Shown in pieces: positions 12,927 to 17,981 of a DNA stretch of 64,000 nucleotides. The position numbers and the translations under genes are program-made. Under the pieces are notes generated by a model. The model did no database searches. It was not told where the DNA came from and was given only the letters and a program-made list of their open reading frames with translations. How positions within the stretch are numbered: the first letter of the stretch is position 1; each line of letters starts with the position of its first letter. The stretch is from the sequence record MZ622713.1. The stretch is one strand, 5' to 3'.

Positions 12927-14684
12927 TTAAGCTGCTTTCGGTAGTGGGATACCAAACTCTTCTTCAAACATATCAGGGAATACTTCGTCCATCTCCTCGT
13001 AACCCGGGAACTGGTGCAGAGTTGCACATAGTGATACCGCGTTAGCTTTAGGTGATGAAGCGTAGTTAACACCAACCTCACGGAATTGAAGTGGAGTCAA
13101 TCCTTGAATAGCACATGCTTCAATGCGAGTGGTTTTATTGGAGATGTTCAAAGCCACGGTTGCCGTTGGGTAAGCACCCTCTACGTCGATGTCATCGGTT
13201 AGACCACGACCACGGGAACGAATGCCCGGCATACCCACAAACACTGCTTTACCATTGTCGGCGTTTTTCTCGGTCTCTAACAGAGCAATCCAATCACCCA
13301 ACGTTGGTTTGTGTTTATCCAATTCGTCTTTCTTACCACCACGACCTTTAGTGCCCCAGATGTAACCATGTTCCTCAGCGATAAAGGATAGTTCGTTAGA
13401 GATACATTTAGGTTGAGATGGGTAATCAAAGAACTCAGTAGACTTCAATAGCAATGGTAGGTTCAGAGCGATATCGTTGGTTTTCTCATCCATCTCTTCA
13501 ATAACTAAGTTATCTGAGATGTTGTACATGCAGTATTCAAACTTAGCGTGTTTCTGCATCCAACGGTGCCAAGCACCTTTACCCTGAGTTAAGTGTGCGC
13601 CTTTGTCCGTGTAGAGCTTACCCTCGATGCCGTTATCTTGAGCAGTGAATTCCAGTGAGTAAGATTCTTTCTTACCTTTAGGAGCGTTCTTAATTGCATA
13701 GAAACTTGCACCGTCCAACCACTGCCATTTAGCTGCTGCTCGAACCGTCGGGTATTGTTCTTGCCATTCTAGCGGTTGAGAGTCACCATTCTCTTTACGT
13801 TTATGAGTACGACCTTTGTCATACTTGTAGTAACGGAATTCACGAGGAATGGATGGGTCCGTGTACACTTCTTCTAAGTCACGACCGCCTGTAATCAAAG
13901 CGTGTTCATTACGCTGCATATCGTACGAGGCGTTCCACGATGAGATGAAGTCAGGTTCCCACATGTGCCAAACTTTAATGTTGTTCTCAACACATTCGGT
14001 TTGACTATCCACCAAGTTATAGTGAACGGTTGCGTTACGGCGTCTTAAACGCTCACCTATTAGTTCTTGTTCAGCTTTATGAAGACCATCTAATATTTCT
14101 TCGTCACTAAGTCCGTCAAAGAAACTACGAACCACAGAGAAGAATATTTTCTCTTTCATGGTAGTAGAAGCCATGATTACGTCTTCACCATCGCCGTTGA
14201 CCATATCGGTCTCAACGTCGTATGCTGCCAACGTAGCTGGTTCGGTTTCTTGGTAGTCAGGGTAGCGTTCGAAATACTTACGTTTAATCAAAACTGGAAC
14301 TGAAGTTTCACACCCAAATACATAAGGGTTGGCTTTTACAGCCATTAAGTCGGCATTGCGGTCATTGATACCAAAAAGGACACGCTTAATGCTCATCGCC
14401 AAACGTGATTGAGTTGAACGATATTTCTTCACTAAGCGTTTGTCGATATAATCTTTCTTCTGTTCAAACTTACGATACTTTTCTTTTACGATGTAGAAGT
14501 CCCTAACGTAGTCAGCAACTTTAAGAAATTGGTTGGTTCGCTCACCACTCTCATGTATGGTCGTTTGTTTGATAAACGTCATATCCTTAAGCGGGTCCCT
14601 TTTAGACGGAACATAAACCGCGTGCTTACACACTTTCCCTTTAACAGGGGATTCGCTTGAAGGCGAGGTGTAACTATAATTCAT
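12927..14684 (-). CDS. Split family-B DNA polymerase, exonuclease/motif-A subunit (phiKZ gp82-like)
   Basis: ExoI AYDVETD, ExoII SWNASYD, ExoIII-like YNISD and motif A DIDVEGAYP; motifs B and C are absent. GAGGA RBS favours the ATG at 14684 over 14699. Confidence 0.85.
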   Translation of the reverse strand: MNYSYTSPSSESPVKGKVCKHAVYVPSKRDPLKDMTFIKQTTIHESGERTNQFLKVADYVRDFYIVKEKYRKFEQKKDYIDKRLVKKYRSTQSRLAMSIKRVLFGINDRNADLMAVKANPYVFGCETSVPVLIKRKYFERYPDYQETEPATLAAYDVETDMVNGDGEDVIMASTTMKEKIFFSVVRSFFDGLSDEEILDGLHKAEQELIGERLRRRNATVHYNLVDSQTECVENNIKVWHMWEPDFISSWNASYDMQRNEHALITGGRDLEEVYTDPSIPREFRYYKYDKGRTHKRKENGDSQPLEWQEQYPTVRAAAKWQWLDGASFYAIKNAPKGKKESYSLEFTAQDNGIEGKLYTDKGAHLTQGKGAWHRWMQKHAKFEYCMYNISDNLVIEEMDEKTNDIALNLPLLLKSTEFFDYPSQPKCISNELSFIAEEHGYIWGTKGRGGKKDELDKHKPTLGDWIALLETEKNADNGKAVFVGMPGIRSRGRGLTDDIDVEGAYPTATVALNISNKTTRIEACAIQGLTPLQFREVGVNYASSPKANAVSLCATLHQFPGYEEMDEVFPDMFEEEFGIPLPKAA

Positions 14685-14766
14685 TTCAGCCTTCCTCATT
14701 TTATGACTGGATTGTATTTAGGTCTAGTATAATGCGCATTGTAGTAAATTTAAAAAGGTAATCCAA

Positions 14767-16095
14767 ATGATCAACAACAAATTCTTAGAGCCGCCACTTC
14801 AAATTGCGGGGTTAGAGTTTATGGATTTCCAATCCCGTGATTTCTTTAATGAAATGGTAGCTTTGTTTGAACCTATGGTGGTAGACGCTCAGTTGAGTGA
14901 GATTCCAATGGGTATTCATGAAGTGATCAAAAAATACACGGGGTTTGAAAACTTCAACTTCAACCTGATTGATTACGGTAACTTAGCAATCGATGCTGGT
15001 TACGTATCACCGGGTAACATCCTTAACTCAAAGGATATCGAGTACTTCCTGCCTAAGTCGCAAACGAACCTGTATCGTTGGTTCACGCAAAACCAAGCTA
15101 GTTTTATGCGTGGTACCATTGATTTTAAAACAGGTAAAGTTGGTGGTGCTTATGCAACCATGCCGTTCGAGATCTACATCAACTACGATCTAACGAGTTT
15201 CATGGCTAAGAAAGATGACCTTAAAATGGTTGAACAGCTTATTGCTTTCATCACCCATGAAATTGGTCACGCTTTCTCTGGCATTTTCTCTATCCACCGT
15301 TTCTTGATGGATTCATATGCCATCACTTCAGCAGTTCATTTCATGAGCGGTGCTGAACACGGTGAAGCAGAAGTTGCGATCTATAAAGATGCTTTGCGTC
15401 TTATGGAGATCGACGAGCGTCAAGTTAAAGACCTCAAGAAAATTGCTGAGTCAGGTGATACGGAATTAATCGTAACTAGCTTGAACAAACTCGCTCAACA
15501 ACGTACTCAGATGAACTCACGTTCATTAGGTGTGGACTTGATGAACTCCGAAGTTCTAGCTGACGTTTACGCTATCCGTATGGGTTGTGATAAGTCGTTG
15601 ATCGAAGGCACCAAAGGTCTTAATGATTCTTTCCTAATGGAATCATTGTTTGGCATCTTGGCGTCAAGTGTTATCATGGCAGTGATGACTGCGTCTGTAA
15701 TCCCAGTTATTGGTGTAGTTGCAGGTGTGTTCTTTTTGTCAACAGCACTATTCTCATTGATGACTTTCAACATCACCATGACCGCAGATATCTACGATAC
15801 TCCGTACCGTCGTATTCTGAACATGCACCAAGAGCAAATTCAACGTCTTAAACAGATGAAGAACCTATCTGACCGTGACCGTCGTCAAATGTTGAAAGAC
15901 CTAGATAACAACTTGAAGATCGTTAAATCAGAAAAACCGTTCTTCGAGGACACTGGTGTTCAACGTATGCTAAACTGGATGTTCAGTGAAGGCACGCCAC
16001 GTTACGATGCTTTGGAACATTACACCAAAATCATGTTGAACAATGAGATGACCATTGTAAGCAACAAAGTACAACTTTTAGGTAAGGGAGTTTAA
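14767..16095 (+). CDS. Putative virion head protein with zincin metallopeptidase motif and transmembrane segments
   Basis: THEIGHA (HExxH) plus EVLAD (ExxxD), a long hydrophobic stretch, and an N-terminal AGLE site; first gene of the head cluster. Confidence 0.65.
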   Translation: MINNKFLEPPLQIAGLEFMDFQSRDFFNEMVALFEPMVVDAQLSEIPMGIHEVIKKYTGFENFNFNLIDYGNLAIDAGYVSPGNILNSKDIEYFLPKSQTNLYRWFTQNQASFMRGTIDFKTGKVGGAYATMPFEIYINYDLTSFMAKKDDLKMVEQLIAFITHEIGHAFSGIFSIHRFLMDSYAITSAVHFMSGAEHGEAEVAIYKDALRLMEIDERQVKDLKKIAESGDTELIVTSLNKLAQQRTQMNSRSLGVDLMNSEVLADVYAIRMGCDKSLIEGTKGLNDSFLMESLFGILASSVIMAVMTASVIPVIGVVAGVFFLSTALFSLMTFNITMTADIYDTPYRRILNMHQEQIQRLKQMKNLSDRDRRQMLKDLDNNLKIVKSEKPFFEDTGVQRMLNWMFSEGTPRYDALEHYTKIMLNNEMTIVSNKVQLLGKGV

Positions 16096-16096
16096 A

Positions 16097-16507
16097 ATGT
16101 CACACCTAAACCATATTCTTGCGCTGAACACAAAGCTTGTAGAGGATGACATCACTGCATGTCCTATCCATCATGCTAAGATTGTTGATTCAGCTGTAAC
16201 CCGTGCAATCATCGCTTACGCTTACATCACTGGCGGTATCGAAGGTCCTGCGCTTACAGAACCTACTCGTGAAGCAATGCACAAAGCAGTTGAAGCGTGG
16301 AATGAAGTTTCCCCTCTCAACTACCGTAAGATTTTCGATGACGTGACCATCATCCTGCAACGTCTTTACAACCAAGCAGCATTCGGTGGTAACTTCCAAC
16401 CAATCAAAGTTGACATTGAAGATCTGGATATCGATCTACTTGACATCCCTGAATTCAAAACTCTGTTCCACGCTCTGTTGACAGAGATCATTGAGTGTAA
16501 CAAATAA
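16097..16507 (+). CDS. Putative virion protein
   Basis: 136-aa ORF with GGAG RBS inside the structural operon. Confidence 0.7.
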   Translation: MSHLNHILALNTKLVEDDITACPIHHAKIVDSAVTRAIIAYAYITGGIEGPALTEPTREAMHKAVEAWNEVSPLNYRKIFDDVTIILQRLYNQAAFGGNFQPIKVDIEDLDIDLLDIPEFKTLFHALLTEIIECNK

Positions 16508-16517
16508 GGAGTGAGTC

Positions 16518-17981
16518 ATGAGCAAAGCTCCTAATTTTGTACCAATGGGAACAGCGACTGGTTCAGGCGTTAAACTTTCTGACGGTGAACAACTTATCGA
16601 CATGGATGAAGTCTATGACGACAAGCACACTGAAGAAGAAACCAAAGCTCTGTCAGAATACCTGCGTACAGGTAAACTAAGCAAGAAAGCTCTGGTACAA
16701 CAAAAAGTTGCAGGCACTGAACGCTTCGAACCAGCATGTACTGAATTAAACGGTATCCTAGGTGGTGAGTCGTTCTTAAAGAACATCGCTAAATCAGCTG
16801 CTGAGTTTATCATTAAAATCATCAGAATGATTGCTGATTCCATCACATGGTTGGTTAACAAGGTACGTAGCATCGCATCGTACTTCAGTGACAACCGTGA
16901 AGTTCAGAAGTCTGAAGAATTGCTTCGCGATATCGAAGACAAACTCATGCAACTGGGTGGTCCTTCCTTTAACCTAGTTAACGTGAAAGAGTTGTTCGAA
17001 GATCGTCCTGCGGTAGCACGTCGCCTTCAAATCGTACGTCTTCTTAAAGCTCGTAACGAAAAGGTTATCGATGCGGTATCACGTCTCAACGACAATGTTC
17101 CTAAGATCAAGAACTTGATCAATGAACTTGGACGTCATGAAGCGGGCGTCAACAAAACCAAGTCTACTTTCCTTAACGGTGTTAAGTACCTTCGTAAACG
17201 TGTTAAAGAAGGTTCGTTGACAATGGAAGATGTGGGTCGTTGGGAAGCTCAGGTTAATGACCTAGTGTCTAATCATCTACAAACCCATAACTTGAAAGCA
17301 GTCTACGTTAAGCTGGCCGCAGCCACCGCCTTAGATAAAGAAGATCAAGAGATTCTTAATGCCGAGCAACAGTTCTCTGATTTCTCCAAGATGATGGCTA
17401 AGACCCAAGAACTTACTAAAGACACCGTAGCGGTAGAAGACTTTGTTCAGATGCAGCAATACGGTGCAAGTCTACGTAAGGTTATCGCAGATGACCCGGG
17501 TGCTTGGGATGTGGTGATTGACTTAGGTGATGCTAAGGAACTACAAGACTTAGTTAACAAGAAAGACTTGGAGTTCTTCCAAGAGATCTCTGACAAACTA
17601 GGTATTGATCGTCCTATCGCCATCTACCGTGAATTCGCGTCTCGTTGTGCTAACTACGTATCGACTATCCGTCAATGTGTGGACACCGCTGTACGTTACG
17701 GTAATGAAGTTCGTTACTTAGCTGAGTGGTCTCAACGCTACGATCTGATCTTAGGTGTTTACTCACTTGAGACAACCAAGCAGCGTAAAAATGCTCGTCA
17801 AGAATACTACGACAAGACTGGTATTCAGCTAGACACAGCTAATCTTAAAGATGTGCCTGAAGACGGCTTGGATGGTAAAGAACGCGCTTGGCGTAATCTG
17901 TACGCACGTTTGTTCCCGGGTCTAAAGAACGACATGAACACGTTGTCTCGTAAACTAAATGCTGGGGTGACCGTAAAATGA
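16518..17981 (+). CDS. Putative internal head protein (phiKZ gp86/SPN3US gp47-like position)
   Basis: Propeptide-like N-terminus with AGTE and GGE|SFLK, followed by an amphipathic helix. Confidence 0.6.
   Translation: MSKAPNFVPMGTATGSGVKLSDGEQLIDMDEVYDDKHTEEETKALSEYLRTGKLSKKALVQQKVAGTERFEPACTELNGILGGESFLKNIAKSAAEFIIKIIRMIADSITWLVNKVRSIASYFSDNREVQKSEELLRDIEDKLMQLGGPSFNLVNVKELFEDRPAVARRLQIVRLLKARNEKVIDAVSRLNDNVPKIKNLINELGRHEAGVNKTKSTFLNGVKYLRKRVKEGSLTMEDVGRWEAQVNDLVSNHLQTHNLKAVYVKLAAATALDKEDQEILNAEQQFSDFSKMMAKTQELTKDTVAVEDFVQMQQYGASLRKVIADDPGAWDVVIDLGDAKELQDLVNKKDLEFFQEISDKLGIDRPIAIYREFASRCANYVSTIRQCVDTAVRYGNEVRYLAEWSQRYDLILGVYSLETTKQRKNARQEYYDKTGIQLDTANLKDVPEDGLDGKERAWRNLYARLFPGLKNDMNTLSRKLNAGVTVK

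Follow-up and report, generated by a model that had tools for sequence, protein, structure and literature searches.

In phage SPN3US, the protein gp45 was listed from mass spectrometry as "Head. Processed at ASE-20" (PMC5694885 Table 1; PMC10052503), the processing enzyme being the prohead protease gp245 (PMC5694885; PMC10052503). The protein is of middling abundance, with a spectral count per mass (SC/M) of ~3, whereas the portal (12 copies) has 1.3 and the tail sheath (~264 copies) 8.8, and its short propeptide was likened to T4 capsid-targeting sequences (PMC5694885). A conserved, uncharacterized zincin-like metallopeptidase was also described among the structural proteins of the phiKZ-group (group 1) jumbo phages (Iyer et al., 2021; PMC7824862); the example accession given there, AMR59696.1, may belong to phrog_2767, the family considered here. 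The present analysis concerns the ortholog of gp45 in Vibrio phage phiKT1019, whose host is V. parahaemolyticus. The DNA under study, termed the window, is a stretch of 64,000 nucleotides that comprises the first 64 kb of this phage and is identical to GenBank record MZ622713.1. The open reading frame (ORF) at positions 14767-16095 carries a coding sequence (CDS) annotation in that record as hypothetical protein UPT53849.1 and is single-copy in the phiKT1019 genome. Its product is predicted to be a zinc metallopeptidase remotely related to the M48 family which is housed in the phage head and which possesses a hydrophobic hairpin that may anchor it in a membrane. Public annotation and a single comparative paper had already recorded the family and its zincin character.

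Conserved motifs of the predicted peptidase

The phiKT1019 protein was matched across residues 3-438 by phrog_2767 (E 1.3e-108), a family of unknown function. Searches with tblastn matched 103 phage records directly and 265 via the PCH45 ortholog: EL, OBP and PCH45 were reached directly, and phiKZ, SPN3US, PhiPA3 and Goslar through PCH45. The hosts named in these matches all were Gram-negative, the phages named were phiKZ-type jumbo phages, and the gene was found in every relative examined, including phages of Vibrio, Pseudomonas, Salmonella, Erwinia, Ralstonia and E. coli. Judged by homology and by the order of its genes, phiKT1019 itself belongs among the phiKZ-like jumbo phages. The orthologs comprise phiKZ gp84 ("structural head protein"), PhiPA3 gp086 ("virion structural protein"), EL gp52 and SPN3US gp45. 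The phiKT1019 protein shares with the phiKZ gp84 and SPN3US gp45 family all of the motifs described below, the hydrophobic segment, an N-terminal small-x-Glu site and the order of the surrounding genes, and differs in sequence only, with 15-33% identity to the named members.

A word-based protein search recovered 43 relatives from which a 32-sequence alignment was built. The addition of seven orthologs, from phiKZ, SPN3US, PCH45, EL, Goslar, Moabite and Proteus phage 10 (15-33% identity), produced a set of 39 sequences. In the 32-sequence alignment, residues E17, G116, G123, V125, G127, H164, E165, G167 and H168 were invariant, as were E262, D266, Y268, R271, G273, Y343 and R349, and G15 was nearly so. 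H164, E165, H168, E262, D266, R271, G273, Y343 and R349 remained invariant or nearly invariant in all 39 homologs, down to 15-20% identity.

The first-pass annotation, made from the nucleotide sequence and its translations, had pointed to a HEIGH (HExxH) motif with a downstream EVLAD (ExxxD) motif as the ligand arrangement of a zincin, to an AGLE site at residues 14-17, and to a hydrophobic stretch of roughly 50 residues that follows EVLAD. HEIGH and EVLAD (residues 262-266, nt 15550-15564) each were present once and conserved in the family, the patterns HE..H and E...D having a single occurrence apiece in the 442-residue protein, and AGLE was located exactly where it had been placed (nt 14806-14817). 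The hydrophobic stretch also was found after EVLAD, but it is slightly shorter than stated: the segment quoted spans 40 residues and the uncharged run 42. Conservation of the two histidines and two glutamates across homologs, which had been suggested as a check, held for the ligands and for the catalytic Glu down to the lowest identities. Thus, the HEIGH and EVLAD motifs are confirmed as sequence features far beyond chance, and the overall conservation is as expected of an active metalloenzyme whose hairpin seeks a membrane.

The spacing of 94 residues between H168 and E262 is long due to a family-specific helical insert (~residues 177-257). This insert resembles generic four-helix bundles, with cytochrome b562/BRIL-like matches at Z 4-6. 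Its conservation within the family is moderate, and it might serve as a lid or as a module that binds substrate.

Relationship to M48 enzymes and other zincins

Profile comparisons indicated a distant connection between the family and M48 peptidases. The M48 profile PF01435 scored 20.4 bits with the Moabite ortholog, 20.0 with that of Proteus phage 10, 17.7 with SPN3US gp45 and 11.0 with the Goslar ortholog. It was the best Pfam family for four of the seven distant orthologs, with matches that spanned the HExxH-to-Glu interval, and it matched three of the 32 alignment members weakly. The phiKT1019 protein produced no match to PF01435 even at E 1, the gathering threshold being 20.3 bits. As it falls below this threshold, the protein is best called M48-like, a remote relative rather than a Pfam-defined member of M48. 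One neighboring cluster in the protein atlas has PF01435 in 15% of its members.

When the profile of 39 sequences was compared by hhalign with an alignment of E. coli HtpX, BepA, YcaL and LoiP, a match was obtained with 82.6% probability (E 9.6e-6), and the segment of highest confidence was the region of E262-V-L-A-D266. The extended alignment placed HExxH on HExxH and ExxxAD on ExxxAD, collinear with the four E. coli M48 paralogs. A greedy alignment of low confidence paired Y343 with the His of HtpX THPPLDKR and R349 with its Arg, with Tyr for His and the Pro shifted, and the Y343/R349 motif is a probable counterpart of the C-terminal HPxxxxR of M48. The comparison was informative only with the four paralogs and the 39-sequence profile, as HtpX used as a single sequence returned a probability of 6%. 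The GenBank record of the Moabite ortholog names it an "M48 family lipoprotein protease", with a note that cites an HHpred match of 98% to HtpX 3CQB and a BLAST match to phiKZ084, and other records of orthologs have "peptidase" or "beta-barrel assembly-enhancing protease".

Kinship with M48 (HtpX, Ste24/ZMPSTE24, BepA, LoiP, YcaL) therefore is remote but consistent. The likeness, as judged from sequence and models, comprises the HExxH motif and a Glu ligand carried by a helix of ExxxAD type, and may extend to a collinear C-terminal motif (aromatic/His...Arg), to a zincin core of a beta-sheet and two helices, and to membrane association. The phiKT1019 protein differs from M48 enzymes in the ~80-residue helical insert between HExxH and the Glu helix, in the Tyr that stands in place of the His of HPxxxxR, and in a capsid-type propeptide and virion packaging, the latter two judged by orthologs. 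Moreover, the hairpin comes after the Glu helix, whereas in HtpX the hydrophobic segments are N-terminal or intervene between the motifs. The layout of M56 (BlaR1/MecR1), in which HExxH belongs to an N-terminal multi-pass membrane domain and a sensor domain is C-terminal, was not observed: the protein lacks an N-terminal hydrophobic segment and produced no Pfam M56 match.

A structure search (VIA) with the full AlphaFold2 (AF2) model was dominated by unspecific hits on the helical hairpin, and residues 18-280 therefore were refolded alone as the catalytic domain (predicted local distance difference test, pLDDT, 84). Zincins alone matched this domain over its full span, N-terminal sheet through glutamate helix. 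With Z-scores that all lie under the noise guide of the tool (~8), the matches were ZMPSTE24 (Z 6.2; 144 residues aligned, 19% identity, root-mean-square deviation [rmsd] 9.2), Ste24p (Z 5.0-5.3), proabylysin 4JIU (Z 4.9), selecase 4QHF (Z 4.7), the zincin-like 3e11 (Z 4.2), BlaR1 (Z 3.9) and the M48 protein 3c37 (Z 3.7; rmsd 3.3 over 95 residues). In the remaining rows the match was confined to the helical bundle of the insert (residues 160-240 of the domain model). As the Z values are in the noise range, the fold matches serve as corroboration and not as proof. By the ends of the fold-alignment ranges, E262 is opposite the residues that we take to be E415 of ZMPSTE24 and E390 of Ste24p. For the minigluzincins (4JIU, 4QHF) and M56 BlaR1, the minimal catalytic core aligned across the whole domain with low Z and 6-15% identity. 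The minigluzincins are soluble proteins of ~100 residues, and BlaR1 is a sensor that crosses the membrane several times and has a penicillin-binding domain outside the cell.

The zincin chemistry of M48/M56 type proposed in the first-pass annotation is upheld by the conserved ligands, the PF01435 matches in orthologs, the collinear hhalign result and the restriction of whole-domain matches to zincins. Comparison of a predicted structure with M48 and M56, another check that it had suggested, gave these zincin matches with Z-scores within noise, and Foldseek found nothing significant in PDB.

Among predicted viral structures in BFVD, a Foldseek search with the catalytic-domain model recovered two proteins of Bacillus phage AR9 named "Zincin protease" (A0A172JHV9 and A0A172JI27; E 3e-4 and 2e-3; probability 1.00), and further relatives there are named "Peptidase M48 domain-containing protein". 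The likeness to the AR9 zincins is one of predicted structure; they are distant, with 12-13% identity, and are two paralogs of which one has only 323 residues. AR9, like phiKZ, is a jumbo phage with multisubunit RNA polymerases. The models suggest that the peptidase family may extend past the nucleus-forming phages of Gram-negative hosts into the AR9/PBS group, and may be duplicated there.

Probable head location, proposed role and alternatives

The first-pass annotation also had portrayed the protein as packaged and matured by a protease. The first of these descriptions agrees with the listing of phiKZ gp84 and SPN3US gp45 as head proteins, and the second with the cleavage of gp45 after ASE-20, by which a propeptide of 20 residues is lost: in the 39-sequence alignment, Glu-20 of gp45 aligned with E17 of the phiKT1019 protein. 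A search of the phiKT1019 record with profile PF03420 (T4 gp21 family) produced no match and the control also was silent, and phiKZ gp175, the head protease, therefore was used as query. A homolog was recovered with 35% identity (E 1.5e-20), which is encoded outside the window at phiKT1019 positions 152940-153572 (locus L017). An N-terminal small-x-Glu site was found in 39 of 39 sequences, with Gly, Ser, Ala or Thr two residues before the Glu. The pattern [SAG]xE alone is frequent, with four copies in the phiKT1019 protein and ~5 per homolog, and the N-terminal site counts only because its position is conserved and because of the ortholog data. Residues 1-15 had pLDDT <50 in the AF2 model of the full protein. 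That the phiKT1019 protein is packaged and protease-matured is, by this analysis, well supported by homology.

The hydrophobic segment is a second feature common to the family. Residues 293-334 are 42 uncharged residues with a mean Kyte-Doolittle value of 2.0 and a central I-P-V-I-G, 19-residue windows reach 2.4, and AF2 modeled two long helices in this region, at 275-311 and 315-338. A hydrophobic segment lies between the glutamate and Tyr-Arg motifs in all 39 sequences, none of which has a comparable segment elsewhere, and the sequence of the hairpin is poorly conserved save for a central Pro or Gly. The uncharged hairpin has 42 residues in the Vibrio/Photobacterium clade compared to 17-30 in phiKZ and SPN3US, a length that would suit one-sided or re-entrant insertion without a translocon.

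The reading which we favor, and to which we assign a probability of about one-half as a whole, is of an M48-type head peptidase that is matured in the prohead, ejected, lodged in a membrane and active on a target early in infection. The 17-residue propeptide would act like a T4-type capsid-targeting sequence and be removed in the prohead after E17, and the mature enzyme of 425 residues, probably in tens of copies, would be stored in the capsid. It would exit with the DNA and with the neighboring ejection protein of the gp86/gp47 type. The proline-kinked hairpin then would enter the membrane from one side, the catalytic and C-terminal helical domains thus being on one membrane face, and a membrane-proximal host protein or co-ejected phage protein would be cleaved early in infection. 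Ejection, insertion in the inner membrane or early vesicle, and cleavage at the start of infection, as put forward in the first-pass annotation, make a reasonable hypothesis. For the membrane and ejection parts of it the support is indirect: the conserved hairpin is the sole segment of its kind in the protein, and the product of a neighboring gene is, by position, the ortholog of SPN3US gp47. The latter is an essential head ejection protein with a transmembrane helix after its propeptide (PMC5694885).

A number of observations weigh against this reading. Scans of the phiKT1019 protein with Pfam and NCBIfam produced no match, and neither phmmer nor the family profile found any PDB sequence below E 0.1, Ste24p appearing only at E 3.6. 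The VIA scores were low, as noted above, and among the Foldseek results for PDB with the full and catalytic-domain models, Ste24/ZMPSTE24 was at rank 32. The charges that flank the hairpin have no positive-inside bias, and no topology is assigned therefore. SPN3US gp45 was classed as "Head" and not as "Head ejection" (PMC5694885), and Iyer et al. (2021; PMC7824862) favored a role in virion maturation for the zincin-like peptidase of the phiKZ group. In the literature searched, no ortholog was the subject of an experiment on injection or membrane binding, nor of one on activity or substrate; no function was given there for phiKZ gp84, and the papers and reviews consulted on the early infection vesicle were without mention of it.

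Nucleus-forming jumbo phages begin infection within a membrane vesicle. A narrower form of the favored reading, in which the injected enzyme is tethered by the hairpin to the luminal side of the early phage infection vesicle and its proteolysis is needed for an early step, is speculative and rather unlikely in these particulars. The step might be the making or opening of the vesicle, the freeing of packaged RNA polymerase or inner-body proteins, or the disabling of a host membrane protein.

The alternative that survives best is a second maturation protease which acts within the prohead or capsid, for instance to clear propeptides or scaffold or to make cuts other than those of the serine prohead protease, which has no role after ejection, and in which the hairpin packs against proteins. 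This is the proposal made for the phiKZ-group enzyme by Iyer et al. (2021; PMC7824862), and it accommodates both the extensive head proteolysis and clearance of propeptides in such phages (PMC5694885; PMC10052503) and the finding that the ortholog is in the head and itself a substrate of the prohead protease (PMC5694885). However, the 14 SPN3US cleavage sites that have been mapped all fit the gp245 serine protease, and ~80% of the head proteins are uncut so that no orphan cleavage is left to explain (PMC10052503). The enzyme still is mid-abundant in mature SPN3US virions (PMC5694885), and a proline-kinked hydrophobic segment kept in 39 of 39 homologs has no obvious use in a capsid. The proposal is weakened because the mapped cuts fit the serine protease and the hairpin is left without a role, and we consider it unlikely, if still credible.

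A role at the membrane of the producer cell is improbable. The hairpin would insert into the inner membrane during translation, the protein would tether nascent proheads or set them free, or else prepare the membrane at a late stage, and only then would it be carried into the head. The hydrophobicity of the hairpin would be sufficient for insertion during synthesis, HtpX and like M48 enzymes are inner-membrane proteases, and the capsids of the phiKZ-like family assemble at the cell membrane. However, cleavage of the N-terminus of the ortholog by the prohead protease and the ortholog's recovery in CsCl-purified virions place it inside the head (PMC10052503; PMC5694885), and the literature searched gave no sign of a membrane stage for any ortholog. 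An inactive or structural zincin-like module, serving as scaffold or for binding without catalysis, would tally with the weak sequence match to M48 and with a literature that has no activity measured for any member, but is very improbable because the general base and the ligands are invariant (E165, both His, E262 and D266, together with Y343/R349, among lineages at 15-20% identity). Such invariance is expected of an active enzyme, whereas in pseudoenzymes the catalytic Glu or one of the ligands is usually lost.

A predicted zinc protease that is virion-borne and may be anchored in a membrane is a concrete candidate for a function in early infection. The complete set of co-injected proteins is not known according to a 2026 preprint on the Goslar virion, and the words metalloprotease, peptidase and transmembrane are absent from two recent reviews of nucleus-forming phages. 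If the early-vesicle reading is true, the protein would be a druggable factor in early infection that is conserved throughout the Chimalliviridae, and if it acts in head maturation instead it would be a second protease in a well-studied assembly pathway. The catalytic residues allow a clean point-mutant test under either reading.

Features of the locus and neighboring genes

The features of the peptidase gene and its neighbors are collected in Table 1.

Table 1. Positions in the phiKT1019 window of the peptidase gene, its predicted elements and the adjoining genes.
Feature	Coordinates	Strand	Basis
CDS, 442 aa, ortholog of phiKZ gp84 / SPN3US gp45, phrog_2767	14767..16095	+	ORF, homology and synteny
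Predicted propeptide, 17 residues, ending A-G-L-E17; predicted cut E17/F18	14767..14817	+	Conservation; ortholog site
HEIGH, residues 164-168 (H164, E165, H168): two predicted zinc ligands and general base	15256..15270	+	Invariant in 39 homologs
Helical insert, family-specific, ~residues 177-257, between HExxH and glutamate helices	15295..15537	+	AF2 helices
S-E-V-L-A-D-V-Y-A-I-R-M-G, predicted third zinc ligand E262, ExxxAD-type motif	15547..15585	+	D266, R271, G273 conserved
Hydrophobic hairpin, residues 293-334, central Pro-x-x-Gly kink; predicted membrane anchor	15643..15768	+	Hydrophobicity; AF2
Y-D-T-P-Y-R-R with conserved Y343, R349: probable HPxxxxR counterpart	15793..15813	+	Conservation; low-confidence hhalign
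DNA polymerase, divergent; neighbor kept in all relatives examined	12927..14699	-	phrog_3011
phiKZ gp85-like virion structural protein, 136 aa, downstream	16097..16507	+	phrog_14520; synteny with phiKZ, EL, SPN3US, PCH45
Positional ortholog of phiKZ gp86 / SPN3US gp47, 487 aa, downstream	16518..17981	+	phrog_14541; synteny

Synteny around the gene was strict in EL, PCH45, SPN3US, phiKZ and Proteus phage 10, with a common order of DNA polymerase on the opposite strand, the peptidase gene, a gene for a virion protein of ~140 residues and one for a protein of ~500 residues. Genes like those for gp85, gp86 and gp87 lie 3′ of the peptidase gene, a neighborhood conserved with the phiKZ gp84 family. 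The 487-residue protein is labeled "tail length tape-measure protein" in GenBank. The label probably is wrong because the protein belongs to PHROG 14541 ("virion structural protein") and its gene is in strict synteny with those of gp86 and gp47. As in gp47, candidate prohead-protease sites (GTE-68 and GGE-84) are located just before a hydrophobic/amphipathic helix, AAEFIIKIIRMIADSITWLV.

The DNA polymerase ORF may begin at the ATG at 14699 (590 residues), compared to the GenBank start at 14582 (551 residues), and with the longer form the divergent intergenic region upstream of the peptidase gene would measure 67 bp in place of 184 bp. A hexamer that resembles TATAAT is located at ~14728-14733.

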